From the sequence record LC680884.1: a stretch of DNA of 64,000 nt. One strand, written 5' to 3'. Positions 2,898 through 43,600 of the stretch are shown in pieces; position 1 is the stretch's first letter, and the number at the start of each line of letters is the position of its first letter. A program made the position numbers and the translations under genes. The notes below the pieces were generated by a model. The model had not been told where the DNA came from. It did not search any database and saw only the letters and a list, made by a program, of their open reading frames with translations.

Positions 2898-2912
2898 GGG
2901 AGGATACAGTAT

Positions 2913-3371
2913 ATGAGTAAACAAAGAATTCGTGTAACAATTACTGACTCTAAACTTATTCCTACTATTGGAAAAGGTCCAATTAACCGTCCTATTAGTA
3001 TTACTGTAGGTCAGTATGAATTGTTGACTAAACTAGGTTTTAATGTAGTTCGTTATGAAGAAGAAAAACCTCAAAAAATTCAGGAACAGCCAAAACCTCA
3101 AGTGGAAGAATCTGTTGAAGAACAAGAAGTTTCTGTAGAAGATCCTAAAGAGTCTCAAGAAGAAGAAACATTAGTTGAAGAACAAGAAGAAATTTCAGAA
3201 GAAGAACTAGAGGAAATTGATTCTGACATAGCATATACAATGGAAGATCTTGAAGAAGCAACTAAAAAAGAACTTAAAGAAATCTTGGACTCTCGTGGTG
3301 TAAATTATGGATATAATGATACACTCTCTAAATTAAAAGATGCTGTAATTGAATCAAATCCAGAAAAATAA
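2913..3371 (+). CDS. Protein with an acidic linker and a C-terminal HeH (SAP/LEM/Rho-N-like) domain
   Basis: C-terminal EEATKKELKEILDSRGVNYGYNDTLSKLKDAVI fits the helix-extended-helix pattern; SD GGGAGG. Confidence 0.65.
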   Translation: MSKQRIRVTITDSKLIPTIGKGPINRPISITVGQYELLTKLGFNVVRYEEEKPQKIQEQPKPQVEESVEEQEVSVEDPKESQEEETLVEEQEEISEEELEEIDSDIAYTMEDLEEATKKELKEILDSRGVNYGYNDTLSKLKDAVIESNPEK

Positions 3372-3375
3372 AAAA

Positions 3376-3410
3376 AAATAAGGATAGACATATTATGTCT
3401 ATCCTTATTT
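3376..3410. terminator. Bidirectional terminator hairpin
   Basis: AAATAAGGATAGACATA-T-TATGTCTATCCTTATTT between convergent genes. Confidence 0.85.
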
Positions 3411-3413
3411 ACA

Positions 3414-3752
3414 TTAATCAATTTTTGATAGAGTAATTTCTACCCTATATCCAATTATTTCACACCATTTCTTTACTCTTCCCCAACTAACACTACCCTT
3501 TCGTAGTCCATTAATTAGATTCCAACCTTCAACTCTTCCTAATACATTATATACATCTTGATTGGTAATCTGAGCTTTATTAACTATCTGTTTAACAAAT
3601 ACTGCTAACTCAGTGTCTTTTTCTTCATCAATTTCAAATTCCAATACTTCTACTTCAACCTTACGTCCTTTTCTAGAAGGTTTTTTCTTTTCTGTTTCTT
3701 TTGTATTACTAATTTGAGAGATTTTATCTAGGAAATCATTGCTGTTTGTCAT
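3414..3752 (-). CDS. Putative XRE/Cro-like HTH protein
   Basis: C-terminal ITNQDVYNVLGRVEGWNLINGLRKGSVSWGRVKKWCEIIGYRVEI resembles XRE HTH domains. Confidence 0.5.
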   Translation of the reverse strand: MTNSNDFLDKISQISNTKETEKKKPSRKGRKVEVEVLEFEIDEEKDTELAVFVKQIVNKAQITNQDVYNVLGRVEGWNLINGLRKGSVSWGRVKKWCEIIGYRVEITLSKID

Positions 3753-3781
3753 AGTTCTGTTTCACCCTTTGCTTTGTAATC

Positions 3782-4807
3782 TTAGAAATTAATGCCGCCG
3801 TCTTTATCATCAAGATCAGGAACTTCGATCTCTGTTGCTCCAGCCATTACATCATTAAAACTAATAGGAGAATCATTATTCTCTCTTCCAGTTTCAATAG
3901 GAGAATCATCTTCAATTCCACCAGTGAATGGGATATCGTCATCACTAGGAATAGGAGGATTTAGATCAGTTCCATTCTCAATGGCACTTTCTAACTCATC
4001 TGGAGTAACATTCTTTGTTTGCGGTTTAAATCCTGCATTACGTTTAGGGCTTGATTCTTCGCTCTTATTTCCACCGAATGTATTACCATTACCTCTAGAA
4101 GCACCATTATTCCCACCAAAGATTCCACGTTTAGGTTTAGCGTTAAAGCCAGCATTATTTTTAGGCGCAGAGCTAAATGTGTTGACAGATGGTTCAGAAC
4201 CTTCTACAGCTGAATCAAACATTAATCCTGTAAGGAACAAAGTAGAGCTTTCAGATAATAGGTTGAAATTATTTAAGATATAATAAAGAGCGCCTAGTTG
4301 AGAAGCATCTAATTCAATTGCATAATCTTCTGATCCAAGGAATAAAATAACACCATTAGTATATACTTGATCTCGTTGAATAATAGTAGGAATAAAAGCT
4401 AATTGTTTACCTCCACCAAGAGGATTTGTTGTCAAAGAAACATTTGCATATTTTGGATTAATATTATTTCCTTGATAAACCTCATCAGTATTAACCATAT
4501 TATAAGCAGATGTTAGGATTGTCATAAAGTTCATCATATGAGGATAGCTGATAAAAATATCCTCATTAATTTTATTTTGAAAATCATGATATGAAAATAC
4601 AAGGAAATCAGAAGTTCTGATTTGGATTTGATCTAACGTACTTCTATCTGAATATTTTTGTGAATCATATGAGCGTGTATAAATAGAATTTAATTTATTA
4701 TCGTTCTTTCCTTTATTTCCATTAAGAATTACATTTTTCACGGAGAATAGATTTCCTACTGAAAATAAAGTTTTTTCAATTCTTTCTACTGTGTCTAGTC
4801 TGCTCAT
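3782..4807 (-). CDS. Putative single-stranded DNA-binding protein (folded N-domain, G/N-rich linker, acidic tail with DDDIPF)
   Basis: Start moved to the ATG at 4807 (SD GGGGGA). Linker GIFGGNNGASRGNGNTFGGN, internal SDDDIPF, acidic tail ending GGINF. Confidence 0.55.
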   Translation of the reverse strand: MSRLDTVERIEKTLFSVGNLFSVKNVILNGNKGKNDNKLNSIYTRSYDSQKYSDRSTLDQIQIRTSDFLVFSYHDFQNKINEDIFISYPHMMNFMTILTSAYNMVNTDEVYQGNNINPKYANVSLTTNPLGGGKQLAFIPTIIQRDQVYTNGVILFLGSEDYAIELDASQLGALYYILNNFNLLSESSTLFLTGLMFDSAVEGSEPSVNTFSSAPKNNAGFNAKPKRGIFGGNNGASRGNGNTFGGNKSEESSPKRNAGFKPQTKNVTPDELESAIENGTDLNPPIPSDDDIPFTGGIEDDSPIETGRENNDSPISFNDVMAGATEIEVPDLDDKDGGINF

Positions 4808-15262: not shown

Positions 15263-15526
15263 ATGAAATACTTAAATGAAAACTTTTATTTAACTATTGT
15301 TAAAGGATATAAAAAATCAGAATTATTATGCGGAGAAACTACTAAAGATGTAATAAATAAGCTTGATACATTAAATAAAATGTCTGATCCTAAAAAACCA
15401 ACTCTCATTAAAAGACTAATTTATTTAAAAGATAATAGATCAATTGATTGTATTATTGTAAACGACTCAGTTAGTAACAGTATTAGAATTATGCCATTGG
15501 GAAATGAAAAAATTGAATTTAAATAA
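15263..15526 (+). CDS. Hypothetical protein
   Basis: 87 aa, SD AAAGGA. Confidence 0.6.
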   Translation: MKYLNENFYLTIVKGYKKSELLCGETTKDVINKLDTLNKMSDPKKPTLIKRLIYLKDNRSIDCIIVNDSVSNSIRIMPLGNEKIEFK

Positions 15527-15554
15527 AATATGAAGGTTAATCCCTTCATATTTT
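15525..15554 (+). terminator. Terminator hairpin
   Basis: AAAATATGAAGG-TTAATC-CCTTCATATTTT plus a T-run. Confidence 0.8.
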
Positions 15555-15581
15555 TTTTTTGTTCATTTCTCTTAAACCGTT

Positions 15582-15593
15582 AACAAATTATTA
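15582..15593 (+). promoter_or_regulatory. Late promoter for the vRNAP beta-prime N gene
   Basis: AACA-AATTAT-TA. Confidence 0.75.
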
Positions 15594-15614
15594 TAATAGT
15601 AGGAGGGAAATTAA

Positions 15615-18600
15615 ATGAAAATAGATACATTAAATATAGATAAATTTATTACTTCTCATGCATGTAAAGAAGTAACAAATCCGGTTTACTTTAATATGGG
15701 AAATATACCAACTGAAGATGGATTATTTTCAACTAGTATTTTTGGTTATCCGGGAAGTAAAGAAAGAAAAATAATTTTTGGTTATATAGACTTAAAGAGA
15801 AAATTTCTCCATCCAGTAATTTATAAGCTTCTAACCTCTATGGATCGAAAAATTGCAGATTGTCTATCTGGAAAAAAATATTTTAAAGTTGAGGGCGGTA
15901 GGTTAGTTGAAGATAAAGATAATGGTAAAACTGGAGTTACCTATTTTTATACTATTTATGACCAATTAAAATTTAGTAATACTGGAACTGATAGAAGAAC
16001 AAGTTATCTTACATTATTAAATAAACTTGGTAAGGATGATATATTTATTGACAAATATTTAGTGATTCCGGCATTTTATAGAGATTATAATCCCTCAAAA
16101 TCTTCTAATGATACGATTAAAGCTGTTGATGAAGTGAATGACAAATATGCTAAATTAATTAGGTATAGCCAATCAATTTCTAAGGGTGAAGATTATGATT
16201 TTATGGGAGTAATAACAGAATCATCTATTCAGACTCTTTTATATGATATCTATGACTATTTTACATCCTCTTTAGCTGGTAAAAATGGTATGTTCCATCA
16301 AAACTCTTTAGGTAAATCTGTTGATTATGCAACTCGTAGTGTAATCTCAGCACCACGATTTAAGTCAAATAGCTGGAAGGATAACCCTATTAGATTTGGA
16401 TGGACTGGTATTCCCCTATCACAATTAGTGGTAGAATTTTATCCATTCTTTCTTAAATATATCCAAGATTATATTCTTGAACGTGAATCAGAACTTAGTA
16501 AATTTAAGCATAATGGAAAAGAGATAACTATCAGTAATATAAGAGAGCAGTTCTCTGAAGAAGCAGTAAAAAAGATGATCTCATTATACATTAAGTCTAT
16601 TGAAAGTCGTTTTAATAGTTTAATGATTAAAGATGATAAGGGGAATGAAATTCCTATTCCATTATATAGAGAAGAACTAGGGCGTAACTTTACATTAACT
16701 GATATTCTATTCATTGCGGCAGTTGATATTACCAAAGATAAACATGTATATGTAACAAGGTATCCAATAGAGCAGTATCGTATGTGACGTTCTCCTATAA
16801 GCATTTAATGTGAAATGGAGTAGATTTTATAATCTAAACTGTAAATGAGAACAAGTAAAAGATATGACCATTTTCATTGAAGACTTGTCGCTAATACTCC
16901 TACATGCATCTATTTTAAACTATATAAAATATTTGTATGAAGTTAGGTGAAGTCATCTGAATATTAGTAGTACTATAATACTAATAGATAGGGTGGGCGG
17001 TGCTATAATATGATGAGGAACACGAACCTTTTTATACTATATAAATTCAGGGTTTAGTAATACGGTACTGGTGAACGACCTGATTGTAAAGTGTGGTACA
17101 ATAGAAGTTTATATAGGGCAGAAGGCATCTAAGTTATAGCTATACTATCATTTACGGAACGTCAGAGATTCTATATAAGAGAAATTATAGTTGATACTCT
17201 TATATAGAAAGTCAGCAGACCATAGTAGTTATGAAGATGGGTAACTCCATTGGAGCGAAGGGTCATAGTCAGTTTAATAAAAATAATCGAACAATCACAA
17301 AACATAATAATAAATAGTTATGTGGAGTGATTTTAATGAGAAAATTGGATAATACTTCATTTGATTTAAGACTAAATCAAATACTAAAAGGTTACAAACG
17401 AATTGGTGAATATATTAATTCTAAAACAAAAATTTTAATATTACATGAAATTTGTAATAAAGAATTTGAGGCAAGACCTTGTAACTTATTACAGGGTTAT
17501 GGATGTCCTCATTGTAATTCAAAAGAAAAGTTAACTACAGAAAAATTTATCAATAAGGTTAAGGAATTAGTAAAAGATGAATATACTGTTTTGTCTAATT
17601 ATAAAAATTATCATTCTAAGGTAACAATGCGTCATAATAAATGTAAATTCATTTATGAAGTCAAAGCAGGAAATTTTACATCTCTAGGGAGACGTTGTCC
17701 TAACTGTTCAGGACTTATTAAGAAAAATAAAGAATATGTTCAAGAACAGTTAGACAAAATAAATCCTAATGAGTATAAAGTGATTGGTGAGTATATAAAT
17801 AATGTAACTCCATTAGAAATAATACATTTAGAGTGTAATACTATTAATAAATTTTCATTAAAAAATATTACATCTAATAAATTTTCATGTAAAAACTGTA
17901 AAATGAGTAGTGGGGAATTATTAATAAAAAATATTTTAAATAATATGGGAACAGAATATACCTATCAAAAAACTTTTAAAGAATGTAAAGATAGAAAACC
18001 CTTACCTTTTGATTTTTTTGTAGAGGAATTTAATGCTATAATAGAATATGATGGTAGACAACATTTTCTTCCTATCTTTGGTAACGATGAAAATGACCGT
18101 ATTAAAAAATTAGAATTAATACAAAAACATGATAATATTAAAAATGATTTTTGTAAGAAATATAATTTACCAATTCTTAGAATTAAATATGATACACCAA
18201 TCGATAGTATACCAATTCTTATTAAAAAATTTTTATTAAATTGATGGAACGCCTTATGCGATGAAAGTCGCACGTAGGGTGTGAAGTGGGGGAAAAAGAG
18301 GAGATAAAATCAAATCTTTACCTATCACTATAGAATATTTATCCAAGTAAAATAAGAATTCTTTCAACAAAGGAAACACGACCTCAAAAGCTGGAAGATA
18401 GATACTTACCTGATTATCCTGTTATATACCCTGACTATCCCGCAGAGGATGAACTTTTTGTTGATACAGTAATTCCTTATAATGGTTATTTAAAGGCTTT
18501 AGGCGGAGACTACGATAAAAATTAATATTATTTCTTTTTAAGGGAATACAGTGTCAAATAAACAAATAATTATTAATTATTTGGAGGTATTAATGTATGC

Positions 18601-20568
18601 CACATAAAAAGACACTGGACGAATTCAAAGAAGAAGTTAAATTACTAACTAACAATACCTATACAGTTTTATCCAATGAATATATTAACAATAAGACTAA
18701 AATCAAATTAAGGCATGAATTATGTGGAAATATATATGAGGTTAGACCTGATGTATTTCATAATGGTAGAAGATGTCCTCAGTGCGCTGATATTAATAAA
18801 GGTAAATCAAGATTAAAAAGCAATGATGAGTTTAAGAAGGAATTAAAAGAAAAGACTAATGGAAGACTTATAAGTCTTGAGAAATATATCAATATCGATA
18901 CCAAAATACTTTTCAGATGTAATGACTGTAATTATGAATGGAAGACTACTCCTTATTATGCTTTGAAAAATAGATGTCCTCAATGTTCTGGTAAAAGAAG
19001 ACTAACTACTGATGAGGTTAAAAGAAAAATTAGCTTAGTTACAAATAATGAGTATTCATTATTAGGTGAATATCGTAATAATAAAACGAAGATTAGATTG
19101 TTACATCATAGTTGTAATAAGGAGTATGAAGTTACAATTAAAAACTTTGATAATGGAAATAGATGTCCATATTGTGCATTTAAAAGTTCATCAAAAATGG
19201 AAAAAGAACTATCTTCTTTTATTAAAGGATTAGTTGTAGATAAAGTCATATGTAATGACAGGAAATTACTTGAAGGTAAAGAGATTGATATATTTATTCC
19301 TTCCAAAAAAATTGCTTTTGAATTTAATGGTTTATATTGGCATTCAGAGCAAATGGGGAAGAAAAGAAACTATCATTTAGAAAAATTAGAAAAATGTAAT
19401 AGTAAAGGGATTAGACTAATTCAAATTTTTGAAGACGAATGGGTTAACAAACCTCTCATAGTAAAAGAAAAAATAAAACACCTACTAAAATTAAATAATT
19501 CTACTAAAATATACGCTAGAAATTGTTATGTAGAAGTAATTGATAACAATTTTAAAAATGAATTCCTAGAAAGAAATCACATTCAGGGAAAAGATTTGTC
19601 ATCAATTAAATTAGGCTTATGGCTTCCAAAAGAAGATGGCGATGAACTTGTAGCGGTAATGACTTTTAGTAAACTTAGAAAAAGCCTAGGTAGAAATAGT
19701 GCTGATAATATTTTTGAACTATCAAGATTCGCTACCGATATGGACTATAGAGTAATAGGTGCTTTTAGTAAACTTCTCAAATACTTCGAGAGAAATTATG
19801 AGTGGAAAGAATTAATAACCTATGCAGATAAACGCTGGTCAGATGGCAATGTTTATATCAATAATAAATTTGAATTAAGTCATATTAGTAAACCCAACTA
19901 TTGGTATGTTAACGTTGAAAAAACTCAACGATTCCATAGATTTAATTATAGAAAGTCTAATCTCAAAAAGAAATTTCCAAAATTATATAGTGATGATAGT
20001 ACTGAATTTGAAATCATGGATAAAACTAGATTTAAAAGAATATGGGATTGTGGTAATTTAGTATTTACCTATAAAAGATAATAATCTACTGTCGTAGTAA
20101 AACCCTTTTAACTGCTGGAAAATCCTATATGGACAATCAGCATCCAAGCATCTTTAATTCATTTAAAGATGAAGGTTCAACGACTATCGAAACCACTCTA
20201 ACAGATCGTTGTGATAACGCTAGTTAGAAGGAAGGGAGTAGAGTACAGCCAAGCGGTAGAGGTATTCCGTAATAAGGTTATAATTCCTCTTTAAATGGAA
20301 ACGGAGGGCACAATTATATTGTGAAGATATAGTCTCATCTCTATAGTAATATAGAGCAGTTCATAAGAGAACGCAGTAGATGTAGCGAATCTACTGGAAG
20401 ATTTTGGGTGATACAGTATCTCTACGTGGAGTATTTAGTAAAGAAGCTAATGAAGAAGCAGAACGATTAATATGGGAAAAGAAGAATATGTTAGACCAAA
20501 TGGGACGAAACTCTCGTCAAATTGGGAATGAAGCAATACAAGCAATTTATTCTCTAACTAGAGAATAA
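15615..20568 (+). CDS. rpoC: Virion RNA polymerase beta-prime subunit, N-terminal half; spliced join(15615..16779,18332..18516,20407..20568), 503 aa
   Basis: Exon 1 carries DGLFSTSIFG, GKSVDYATRSVIS and VTRYP. Splicing restores YPIEQY-Q-NIYPSKI and the catalytic motif LGGDYD|GDTV (NADFDGD equivalent). The frame is continuous across both junctions. Confidence 0.93.
17301..17312 (+). promoter_or_regulatory. Intron-internal late promoter for the group II endonuclease
   Basis: AACA-TAATAA-TA, 24 nt upstream of the ATG at 17336. Confidence 0.65.
17336..18244 (+). CDS. Intron-encoded homing endonuclease: zinc-ribbon repeats plus EDxHD/Vsr-like PD-(D/E)xK domain
   Basis: Three H-x2-C..CPxC-type modules, then SSGELLI..LPFDFF..IIEYDGRQH. 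SD TGGAG. No RT motifs. Confidence 0.88.
   Translation: MRKLDNTSFDLRLNQILKGYKRIGEYINSKTKILILHEICNKEFEARPCNLLQGYGCPHCNSKEKLTTEKFINKVKELVKDEYTVLSNYKNYHSKVTMRHNKCKFIYEVKAGNFTSLGRRCPNCSGLIKKNKEYVQEQLDKINPNEYKVIGEYINNVTPLEIIHLECNTINKFSLKNITSNKFSCKNCKMSSGELLIKNILNNMGTEYTYQKTFKECKDRKPLPFDFFVEEFNAIIEYDGRQHFLPIFGNDENDRIKKLELIQKHDNIKNDFCKKYNLPILRIKYDTPIDSIPILIKKFLLN
18561..18572 (+). promoter_or_regulatory. Intron-internal late promoter for the group I endonuclease
   Basis: AACA-AATAAT-TA upstream of SD GGAGG and the ATG at 18597. Confidence 0.7.
18597..20081 (+). CDS. Intron-encoded endonuclease: zinc-ribbon repeats, EDxHD-like nuclease, C-terminal Hef/Mom-like GNAT-type domain
   Basis: Three CPxC modules; SKME..EIDIFI..IAFEFNGLYWH; C-terminal YAR..FLERNHIQG..ELSRF..GAFSKLLKYF..TYADKRWSDG..RIWDCG. 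Confidence 0.85.
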   Translation: MPHKKTLDEFKEEVKLLTNNTYTVLSNEYINNKTKIKLRHELCGNIYEVRPDVFHNGRRCPQCADINKGKSRLKSNDEFKKELKEKTNGRLISLEKYINIDTKILFRCNDCNYEWKTTPYYALKNRCPQCSGKRRLTTDEVKRKISLVTNNEYSLLGEYRNNKTKIRLLHHSCNKEYEVTIKNFDNGNRCPYCAFKSSSKMEKELSSFIKGLVVDKVICNDRKLLEGKEIDIFIPSKKIAFEFNGLYWHSEQMGKKRNYHLEKLEKCNSKGIRLIQIFEDEWVNKPLIVKEKIKHLLKLNNSTKIYARNCYVEVIDNNFKNEFLERNHIQGKDLSSIKLGLWLPKEDGDELVAVMTFSKLRKSLGRNSADNIFELSRFATDMDYRVIGAFSKLLKYFERNYEWKELITYADKRWSDGNVYINNKFELSHISKPNYWYVNVEKTQRFHRFNYRKSNLKKKFPKLYSDDSTEFEIMDKTRFKRIWDCGNLVFTYKR

Positions 20569-40665: not shown

Positions 40666-43600
40666 TTATCTATTTAAACTAGTAATAAAATTTAGGCTTT
40701 TCATTCTTTTTTGCTTTCTAATATTATTATCATTCTCATTATGATCTTCAAAAAATCTACTTTCATTCTTATACATTTCTAATAATATTTCACTCTGTGA
40801 TTTTTCACCACTATTAATTTTAGACAATGCATGAATGTTTCTAGCTCTATCTTTATTATTTTCTTCATTCTCATTATTATCGCCATCACTGATGACTTTA
40901 ACAAATTTATTTATATTATTTCCATATAAGAAAGCATAGCATGCCACTAGCCATGAGAATAATGTATCATCATGACCTCCATCCCTATGCTCAATCTTTC
41001 CTTTCTTATTTCTTTCTAATGTTCTTAATTCTTCAAAAATATATTTACTTGTAAACACATATGGAGTATCATTAACTGCATTACTAAGAATCTCATTGAT
41101 CATTATATCCCGACTATCTTTACTAGTAGTAACCCCATAAACTCTTGTTTTAGTCTTAACTGTCTTTTTAGATGATCTTTTTGGATCATCAACTTTCTTT
41201 TCTCCTTTTACTTCTCTAACTTCATAATATAAGTTATTAGCTACTTCTGAACGTAGTAGATCTTGTATTAAAGAGATACCTAAGTTATTTCGTTCTGGAA
41301 TAATGACACCATTAGGACAAAATTCTAATACTAGGTGTATAACCAAATCTTTTAAATCAGGTAAAGATATATTATTACTTCTAAATACTGCTTTTTGAAC
41401 CATATCTTTAGGATCAATAATAGATATCACTGTAAAATCTCGATTCAAACCTGCTCCAATATCTATACCGATTAGCCATGATTTTTTAAATATATTTCGC
41501 ATTTCACTGAAAATTTCAAATTTATATCTTTTCATTACATAAAACTTACCAATAGGTTCACCTGCATGTTGTCCAATTTCTGCTAATTGTTCCTCTGAAA
41601 AAGGCGAAGTATCGTTAGCCAATGTCCATTCCAATAATATTTCACGTTTAATTTTTAATAAGTCATTATTGAGCTGACGACATTGTTTTTGATACCATTT
41701 CTCATCATGTCCTAACTCTTTATAATTAAATACTAAATAAACAAAGTCATTTCGAGAGTTCTGTTCAATATATTTTTTAATTTCATCAATATCCCAATCA
41801 TACCAAGCTTCATCAAATGGACATGCATCATCAATCATACCCTTACAATATTTACCCATTTCTGTATCAAGATCATTCATTTATCTTCCATTAGATTCGC
41901 TACATCTAATGCGTTCTCTTATGAACTGCTCCATGTTACCATGAAGATGAGACTATATCTTCATCTCATTGAGATGCTTCCCTTTTCCAACCTCAATCAC
42001 TTAGGTTGTACTCTACTCCCTTCCTTCTAACTAGCGTTATCACAACGATCTGTTAGAGTGGTTTCGATAGTCGTTGAACCTTCATTGTTATAAACAACAA
42101 TGCTTGGATGCTGATTGTCCATATAGGATTTTCCAGCAATTAAGGAAGATTCAATTACATTATTACTAATGTATTGCCCAATAGTTTAGGAGTTGTTGTA
42201 ATTAATTTTCCGTAAGGAGTACCATTACGCTGTGCGGCTTCTGATGCTTTTGATAGTGCTGGTGCAGCACTCATAATTACCTTCCATTAGATTCGCTACG
42301 TCTAATGCGTTCTCTTATGAACTGCTCTATGTTTCCATAGAGATGAGACTATATCTTCACTCCAGTATTTAATACCTTCATCATGCTCTCCTTTTCCTTT
42401 CGCTTGAAAGTACTCTACTCAATATAATACAAATTATATTTTTCGATAGTCGTTGAACCTTCATTGTTATTTATAACAATGCTTGGATGCTGATTGTCCA
42501 TATATCCTTTAGATTATTACACTTTGGTACTAAAGACTTTAGGAGTTTCCAGCAGTTAAGAGAGTTTTAATACGCCAGTTACACCAGTTTAGCGTATACC
42601 GTATCATTATATTTTAAAAATGCAAATTCATCATCATTTATCTTCATATAGATTCGCTACGCCTATACCGTTCTCTTATGAACTGCTCCATGTTACCATG
42701 AAGATGAGACTATATCTTCATCTCATTGAGATGCCTTCCATTTCCAACTCCAATCGCTTGAGTTGTACTCTACTCCCTTATCCTTATCTAGCATTATCAC
42801 AACGATCTGATAAGTCGGTTTCGATAGTCGTTGAACCTTCATTGTTATTTATATAACAATGCTTGGATGCTGATTGTCCTAAAAGGATGTTCCAGCAGTT
42901 AAGAAGGATTCATTATAATATCACTATTATAATGGGCTAAAAATTTAACCATATAATTGGTACTGTACAACCACGCAAGTTACCTTCATATAGGTTCGCT
43001 ACGCCTATACCGTTCTCTTATGAACTGCTCTATGTTACCATAGAGATGAGACTATATCTTCACCTAAATACGGCGCTCCCCTTTTTGAATACCTATAGCT
43101 TGTATTCTACTCTACTCCCTTATCCCTATCTAGCGTTATCACAACGATCTGATAAGTCGGTTTCGATAGTCGTTGAACTTTACTTTTAAAAGTCTTAGCT
43201 TCTGATTATCCTTGGAAGGACGTTCCAGAAATTAAAGGAGTTTATACTGAGCCATAGTTAGTTAACCCAGTTTGTCAGCGTCAGTAACAGTCCTAGCAGT
43301 ACTCATTGCATCAATTTTATTATTATTCTTTGCACATGAAATTTGAGCTAAGTTATTTGTATCTTTTTTAGGATCTAAATGCGTTTTTAAATAACTTGGT
43401 AATAATTCTGTTATATCATTGAAACGTTTAATATTTAATTGGGAATCGGCGTATTGTTTATTACTAAAAATCATATGAGTATTTTTGGTAGCCCAATGAT
43501 ATACCCATATATATCGACATACAGCCCCAATTGTTTTTCCATTCTGACGAGGTAGTATCTCAATCATATCAATATTATTTTCCATAAGAAACATTTGACC

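Follow-up and report, generated by a model that had tools for sequence, protein, structure and literature searches.

Group II introns were long thought to be absent from phages and to be tied to mobility by a reverse transcriptase (RT). Merk, Jones & Eddy (Nucleic Acids Res 2025; bioRxiv May 2025; PMC12350094) report a group II intron of Bacillus phage PBS1 that carries a homing endonuclease gene (HEG). This intron, located at positions 16780..18331 of a 64,000-nucleotide (nt) stretch of sequence record LC680884.1 (hereafter the window), is the subject of the present analysis. Table S1 of the same paper gives its coordinates as NC_043027 32192..30641 in PBS1 and NC_031039 121998..120447 in AR9, and describes it as class IIB, group-II-D1D4-5, with a CGC triad, the ends GTATG/AT and an open reading frame (ORF) that is a HEG; the copy in phage Internexus is listed as ORF-less, 594 nt long. 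The authors describe the ORF by its CapR-like repeats and an EDxHD/Vsr-like domain, use the words 'distantly related' and 'outgroup', and propose HEG-based homing for this intron. They also point to a passing mention of the AR9 group II intron in 2016 (Lavysh et al.) and to earlier descriptions of LAGLIDADG or GIY-YIG endonucleases in introns of group II (Mullineux et al.). Thus, both the element and its interpretation are already known, and because they were published in 2025, our data add no new kind of system. The additions are incremental: a link between a published transcription start site (TSS) and intron domain IV, the overlap of the ORF with the stem of that domain, covariation counts, six more metagenomic copies at the same codon, and sequence differences that cluster around the borders of the intron.

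As judged from its covarying fold, the PBS1 intron is a group II ribozyme of class IIB whose structure is intact. It probably splices as a group II intron and homes by double-strand-break repair, with a HEG in place of an RT. The 5-kb stretch around the intron is 100% identical to PBS1 (MF360957, NC_043027, LC680884) and 99.6% identical to AR9. The ends of the intron follow from alignment with the intronless phage Goe21 (L002), where positions 2903-4180 correspond to window positions 15501-16779 and positions 4181-4365 to 18332-18516. Because Goe21 joins 16779 directly to 18332, the 1552 nt between them form a discrete insert. An earlier note on this DNA, made from the sequence alone, had proposed an intron with precisely these ends, and the Goe21 gap bears them out to the base. 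The intron is on the plus strand, as are all features described below unless stated otherwise. It begins with GTATG and ends in AT, also as read earlier; compared with the boundary consensus 5' GUGYG / 3' AY, the PBS1 ends are GUAUG, a variant, and AU, and the relatives start with GUCCG or GUACG.

Two Rfam models recognize the ribozyme. The group-II-D1D4-5 model (RF02004) matches 16834-17007 with 80.7 bits (E 1.4e-15), far above its gathering score, and Intron_gpII (RF00029, clan CL00102), which describes domains V and VI (DV/DVI), matches 18247-18331 with 55.2 bits (E 4.1e-8; gathering score 40). An Infernal search with the latter model had been suggested in the earlier note. The fold was analyzed in an alignment of four distinct intron copies, from PBS1, Internexus and two metagenomic contigs retrieved via the endonuclease (L004 and L005), with the ORF replaced by a tetraloop. 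On these four sequences RNAalifold predicts a six-domain structure with 174 pairs, of which 52 are changed on both sides; after addition of two epsilon-epsilon' pairs there are 176 pairs, with 98.1% of cells paired and 53 pairs compensated. The corresponding controls give 23 +/- 3 compensated pairs in column shuffles and 4-10 with slid partners. Because the structure was predicted from those same four sequences, the pair counts favour the fold, though the margin is large all the same.

All six domains can be placed in the window. Domain I (16785..17164) contains many compensated pairs in the RNAalifold consensus and holds the lambda/epsilon' bulge, a tentative second exon-binding site (EBS2) and EBS1. 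The domain II hairpin (17165..17213) has 15 pairs, 4 of them changed on both sides, and domain III (17218..17264, helices 21-23) has 5 such pairs. Domain IV (DIV; 17268..18245) consists of a basal stem, 17268-17284 paired with 18229-18245, that encloses the endonuclease cassette, and in L004 and L005 compensatory changes preserve this stem. The 34-nt DV with the CGC triad, the GAAA loop and the two-nucleotide bulge, pointed out in the earlier note, is indeed found at 18249..18282 (triad at 18250-18252), in agreement with both RF00029 and the consensus fold. The same two sources define domain VI (18285..18329), with the predicted branch-point A at 18324. Reading this helix ourselves, we can draw A18324 as the only bulged base, a branch adenosine 7 nt short of the 3' splice site; the RNAalifold structure has a bulge of two nucleotides there.

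Two long-range pairings, of a kind to which the folding program is blind, can be assigned as well. The sequence GGTACTG at 17064-17070, previously proposed as EBS1, pairs with the exon end CAGTATC at 7/7 positions in each of the four sequences; no other 7-nt site in domain I pairs completely in all of them. This EBS1 also covaries with the intron-binding site (IBS1), the combinations being GGUACUG/CAGUAUC in PBS1 and GGUAUUG/CAAUAUC in L004 and L005, a single compensatory change. The 4-nt lambda/epsilon' bulge, a class IIB criterion of Merk et al. (PMC12350094), lies at 16940-16943 and reads AAGU, or AAGG in L004 (consensus AARC). The two bases at the end of this bulge pair with intron nucleotides 3-4 (AU, CC or AC); no other site in domain I fits all sequences, and the pairing covaries. 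The earlier note had read domain III as IIB-type; here, class IIB is supported by this bulge and by the published classification. For EBS2, the best candidate is UUUUAU at 17030-17035 (22/24 cells paired), with an equally good site elsewhere; the sequence is AU-rich and gives no unique solution. Merk et al. scored the pseudoknot interactions of the PBS1 intron as '+' (PMC12350094).

The interrupted gene is the homologue of AR9 g145, which encodes the beta'-like N-terminal subunit of the virion RNA polymerase (vRNAP) and is described as essential. Its exon 1 (15615..16779), with a weak match to Pfam RNA_pol_Rpb1_1, ends in IBS1 CAGTATC (16773-16779); exon 2 (18332..18516) is 185 nt long and ends in the bases GAT of the catalytic DYD|GD motif; exon 3 (20407..20568) was defined by junction assignment and comparison of the spliced ORF with Goe21. 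Exons 1 and 2 are collinear with the intronless Goe21 rpoC1, and the AR9 gene is annotated as a three-piece join. Joining 15615-16779, 18332-18516 and 20407-20568 yields an ORF of 1512 nt, equal in length to Goe21 rpoC1 and differing from it by 3 amino acids. The group II intron is inserted in the conserved sequence RYPIEQY|QNIYPS, after residue 389 and 61 codons upstream of the catalytic DYDGD. Intronless homologues encode a single continuous protein of 503 amino acids (aa). Unspliced reading of exon 1 meets a stop three codons into the intron. Exon 2, comprising 61 codons, lacks both a start codon and a ribosome-binding site, and DYDGD begins in it but is completed only by exon 3; hence a functional subunit needs splicing.

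The ORF in DIV (17336..18244), a homologue of AR9 g147, encodes 302 aa and is preceded by the Shine-Dalgarno sequence GGAG (17325-17328), eight bases upstream. A search of 5.8 billion proteins yielded 887 relatives. The ORF product is assigned to PHROG 559 (E 1.5e-75) and to several PHROGs described as 'homing/intron-encoded endonuclease'. The N-terminal part (aa 1-190) contains three HCCC zinc-finger repeats of the CapR/DUF4379-like type, with conserved H-C-C-C sets. Their Pfam scores are just under the cut-offs (DUF4379, 22.9 versus 24.5; CapR, 21.1 versus 24.2); the CapR/DUF4379 cut-off is passed by many homologues and by the neighbouring HEG (CapR, 50.3 bits). The C-terminal part (aa ~190-302, window 17903-18241) is a predicted Vsr-fold nuclease domain with the motifs GE (193-194), PFDF, IEYDGRQH (aa 236-243) and D266..K269. 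In an alignment of 40 homologues the three H...C...C..C sets, G193-E194, D226-F227, E237/G240/H243 and D266/K269 are invariant or nearly so, and in I-E-Y-D-G-R-Q-H the residue D239 is likewise conserved, together with E237 and H243. Thus, the zinc-ribbon repeats and the IIEYDGRQH nuclease motif recognized earlier are both present. The absence of RT and maturase from the ORF, claimed at the same time, also stands, as no RT, maturase or endonuclease (En) domain was found in it with Pfam, NCBIfam or PHROGs.

The assignment of the nuclease to a family is less straightforward. The EDxHD family is named for the motif E-D-x-H-D; in this connection Merk et al. cite Dassa et al. 2009. The earlier note had called the enzyme 'EDxHD-type'; that literal motif is absent from the ORF, which has E-Y-D-G-x-Q-H instead, and neither Vsr nor the homing endonuclease I-Bth0305I is among the matches of phmmer and family-profile searches against Protein Data Bank (PDB) sequences. 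Matches to diol dehydratase, Myb and TRIM32 in these sequence searches were discarded as noise. The part of the label that survives concerns the fold. The AlphaFold (AF2) models are confident, with a predicted local distance difference test (pLDDT) score of 92.4 over the entire protein and of 95.7 when its C-terminal 117 residues are modelled on their own. Foldseek matches the nuclease-domain model with Escherichia coli Vsr (1cw0_A, E 5.3e-4; 1vsr, E 6.0e-4; both with probability 1.00) and, at rank 4, with I-Bth0305I (3r3p_B, E 5.2e-3, probability 1.00, template modelling (TM) score 0.66 on the target). The model of the whole three-finger protein gives weak E-values, the best meaningful match being again Vsr (3.6e-3). 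Judging by the predicted structures, kinship to the EDxHD/Vsr enzymes is at the level of the fold only, and 'EDxHD-type' is loose as a family label. In the best-supported reading, the product would be a site-specific DNA endonuclease that combines zinc-finger DNA-binding repeats with a Vsr-fold nuclease.

The endonuclease cassette is embedded in the ribozyme in such a way that the two share sequence. The 16-bp stem of DIV pairs 17269-17284 with 18229-18244 and closes around the cassette, and the last codons of the ORF with its TGA stop (18242-18244) constitute the 3' strand of this stem. The cassette also includes a late-promoter motif, AACATAATAATA (AACA-N6-TA), at 17301..17312; transcription starts at A17312, which leaves a leader of 24 nt before the ORF. 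The position of the TSS comes from differential RNA sequencing (dRNA-seq) of AR9 (Lavysh et al., mBio 2017, PMC5312081), where a primary TSS for g147 is given in a supplementary table. The 50-nt sequence upstream of it is identical to window 17262-17312 and ends at A17312, after AACA-N6-TA. In the same dataset, expression of g147 climbs late, like that of g145 and g146 (PMC5312081). The motif is found 33-46 nt upstream of the endonuclease ORF in 6/7 related introns, including L005, L076, L077, L078 and L079, and is lacking in L004; its background frequency is 0.00084 per nt per strand. The HEG has its own late promoter inside DIV, and therefore the endonuclease is made independently of the precursor RNA or lariat.

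The intron is patchily distributed. We looked up six metagenomic relatives of the HEG (L004, L005 and L076-L079), with endonucleases 46-61% identical. Each of them has a D1D4-5 match upstream of the HEG and DV/DVI directly after its stop codon, and in each the intron interrupts a gene homologous to the PBS1 polymerase gene (42-66% identity), again after residue 389. Three allele states can be observed at this codon: an intron with HEG (PBS1, AR9, L004, L005 and L076-L079), an ORF-less intron (Internexus), and no intron (Goe21, L071 with 74% identity and L072 with 70%). Such patchy presence at a single conserved site is typical of homing elements. A search of IMG/VR with a 16-nt pattern from domain I, GTGAAGTCRTCTGAAT, was less useful: among its 64 loci BLAST confirmed only AR9 as a true relative, L023 having a marginal 49-nt match and the rest being chance occurrences. 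In two of the metagenomic relatives the alignment of the polymerase protein has further gaps, of ~410 nt at DYD|GD (L077 2111-2521) and of ~200 nt after residue 236 (L079 914-1119). Neither has an Rfam match, and they may be undetected introns or assembly or frameshift artefacts.

The exons that flank the intron have diverged unevenly. In comparison with Goe21, exon 2 has 30 differences in 185 nt (16%), exon 1 has 14 in 1165 nt (1.2%) and exon 3 has 1 in 162 nt. Four of the 14 differences in exon 1 fall within its last 23 nt, and 39 of the 45 exon differences are synonymous. The exon 2 haplotype is common to all intron-bearing phages. PBS1 and AR9 differ at 23 positions in 7.4 kb, none of them in the group II intron or exon 2; the differences cluster at 16529-16682, 18517-18620 and 20345-20467, the latter two covering both ends of the neighbouring group I intron and the beginning of exon 3. 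These border-clustered differences look like conversion tracts, such as repeated double-strand-break repair would leave. The direction of the exon 2 tract is not given by outgroups, because every one of them shares 64-72% identity with each of the two haplotypes.

The best-supported scenario is the following. Group II splicing would remove the intron from the precursor RNA so that the polymerase subunit can be made, with A18324 as the branch point, EBS1-IBS1 pairing for exon recognition and DV, which bears the CGC triad, as the catalyst. Because there is no intron-encoded maturase, splicing would proceed unaided or with the help of host or phage factors; that it needs no intron-encoded maturase is suggested by Internexus, since an ORF-less copy of the intron resides there in the same essential gene. 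The 302-aa endonuclease would be transcribed from its own late promoter in DIV (TSS 17312). In a mixed infection it would cut the uracil-containing DNA of the intronless allele near the predicted site CAGTATC|AGAATATT. With the intron-bearing genome as template, repair would then copy in the complete intron together with adjoining exon sequence, so that the intron would home at the level of DNA in the manner of group I introns. From the sequence data we infer splicing, its independence of a maturase, the cleavage site and homing. The chimeric reading advanced in the earlier note, with splicing as in group II and homing as in group I, gains support from the anatomy of the intron, the RT-less ORF and the nuclease fold.

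Several observations weigh against this scenario. We found no RNA evidence of a spliced junction or lariat, and literature searches returned no published splicing or homing data; Merk et al. state that splicing is unconfirmed by experiment (PMC12350094). The foreign tract in exon 2 may belong to Goe21 rather than to PBS1, and the neighbouring group I intron could be the cause of the mosaic exon 2. The identity of the HEGs (46-61%) tracks that of the host genes (42-66%), so that long vertical co-descent is as possible as repeated homing. Finally, the RT search described below used a single query and tblastn only, and covered phage records.

Another explanation for the maintenance of the endonuclease, which we consider tentatively, is that it is kept mainly as an interference weapon against the vRNAP gene of co-infecting intronless relatives. 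This is compatible with homing: by analogy with other phages, the HEG might conceivably serve as both weapon and homing engine, cutting Goe21-like vRNAP genes in uracil-DNA and lowering their yield. The class of the target gene, a vRNAP subunit, is the same as in the system of Birkholz et al. (Science 2024, PMC11620839). In all lineages examined, down to 46% identity, the HEG has remained intact, residing each time at this codon within the same intron, and it has a late promoter of its own; continued homing, however, can also explain this persistence. Intronless relatives that look susceptible do exist, as the Goe21 site is identical to PBS1 over 16773-16779 and 18332-18371. If true, a group II ribozyme would here for the first time carry intron-mediated interference competition. 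In a less likely variant, the HEG protein would have the additional role of helping the intron to splice, as a maturase of a new kind.

The main rival, which we regard as rather unlikely, is that the HEG is a separate parasite that targets and invades DIV of an ORF-less intron rather than the exon junction, or acts as free-standing genes do, and spreads only itself, the ribozyme having arrived otherwise, for example by ancient retrohoming. The relevant evidence comes from Internexus. Its intron is 99% identical to that of PBS1 outside DIV and lacks the region corresponding to window ~17280-18240, its DIV (L003 3170-3190) being a 19-nt hairpin, TCAAAAT-AATAT-ATTTTGA. This deletion was placed by BLAST coordinates and manual inspection, as the global MAFFT alignment misplaced it. 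The sequence of this hairpin does not occur within the PBS1 stem, and therefore the HEG-plus and HEG-minus forms are not one simple deletion apart, which suggests replacement of a cassette rather than a clean deletion. Such an exchange, the promoter and Shine-Dalgarno sequence that belong to the cassette, and the homologous HEGs in group I introns of the same genome would all fit a parasite. Against it, all 6/6 relatives of the ~300-aa HEG subfamily that were looked up reside in the same type of intron at the same exon site, with no other context found, and the tracts of divergence are in the exons, not just around DIV.

It is still harder to believe that the intron remains a retroelement served in trans by an RT/maturase of the host or of another element, with the endonuclease being irrelevant to mobility. 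Merk et al. (PMC12350094) raise trans-mobilisation for ORF-less phage introns, and an RT-bearing relative does exist: the DV/DVI of the intron within Listeria phage LPJP1's DNA polymerase gene (L006 210-299, minus strand) is 85.6% identical to that of PBS1, the closest such case that we found. This likeness hints at the ancestry of the HEG-bearing lineage. The RT of the LPJP1 intron served as the tblastn query against 50,697 phage records (E<=10) and matched 116 of them, the only Bacillus phages being BUCT083 and three phages of B. alcalophilus. However, the records of PBS1, AR9, Internexus and Goe21 had no group II RT match in this search; an RT elsewhere in the genome, the possibility that the earlier note had wanted examined, was thus not detected in PBS1 or AR9 with this one query. 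Moreover, neither the HEG-bearing nor the ORF-less form of DIV retains any remnant of an RT ORF, and conversion-like tracts in the flanking exons would, on general grounds, be unexpected from retrohoming.

The last alternative, a dead, non-splicing relic in a gene expressed in separate pieces, has precedent in the naturally split RNA polymerase genes of jumbo phages (PMC7598289) and would suit the stop that exon 1 meets three codons into the intron, but it is extremely improbable given that the core of the ribozyme is intact and its evolutionary changes are compensatory, that exon 2 lacks a start codon and ribosome-binding site and shares the DYDGD motif with exon 3, and that intronless homologues encode the continuous 503-aa protein.

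The same polymerase gene contains a second intron (18517..20406), inserted between DYD and GD. It belongs to group I, as identified by the Rfam Intron_gpI match at 20045-20356 (84 bits), and its 494-aa endonuclease ORF (18597-20081) is the neighbouring HEG with the CapR score of 50.3 bits mentioned above. The two enzymes have the zinc-finger repeats and part of the nuclease in common (31% identity over 244 aa). In AR9, the intervening ORFs are annotated as g147, 'homing endonuclease, group I intron VSR', and g146, 'Hef-like homing endonuclease', and dRNA-seq assigned the homologue of the 494-aa ORF its own late TSS (PMC5312081). Elsewhere in the window, on the minus strand (41929-43274), four ORF-less group I introns (72-93.5 bits) are packed into 1.35 kb with short exons between them. 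In AR9 this region corresponds to g121, the gene for the large subunit of the terminase, whose annotation joins five pieces.

The significance of the PBS1 element is that, in a jumbo phage with uracil-DNA, a group II ribozyme is paired with an endonuclease for homing at the level of DNA, in an essential gene that also holds an adjacent group I intron with a related enzyme. Direct tests are possible with a natural trio of phages that all infect laboratory B. subtilis: PBS1 with intron and HEG, Internexus with the intron only, and the intronless Goe21.

With the canonical mobile group II introns of bacteria, such as Ll.LtrB with LtrA, the PBS1 intron shares the ribozyme architecture, EBS-IBS recognition and an ORF housed in DIV. 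In contrast to them, it has no RT, maturase (X) or En domain, and therefore target-primed reverse transcription by an intron-encoded protein is impossible. The same combination of a group II ribozyme with a group I-type endonuclease in DIV is provided by the fungal mitochondrial rRNA introns with LAGLIDADG enzymes, or by the GIY-YIG introns. The PBS1 intron differs from these by a predicted Vsr fold with zinc fingers, by residing in a uracil-DNA phage and by a protein-coding target. As for the enzyme itself, the predicted C-terminal fold matches both I-Bth0305I and Vsr, and I-Bth0305I, like the PBS1 ORF product, is named a homing endonuclease; however, the PBS1 ORF has no significant sequence match to either, carries E-Y-D-G-x-Q-H, and uses three HCCC zinc fingers as its DNA-binding part. 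The closest parallel in biological setting is gp210 of phage PhiPA3 (Birkholz et al., Science 2024, PMC11620839), likewise an intron-borne endonuclease in a jumbo-phage vRNAP gene near the catalytic aspartates, and shown to act in competition of PhiPA3 against PhiKZ. There, the intron is of group I, the enzyme is an HNH nickase and the phage is a nucleus-forming Pseudomonas phage, whereas PBS1 is a Bacillus phage with a group II intron and a Vsr-fold enzyme.

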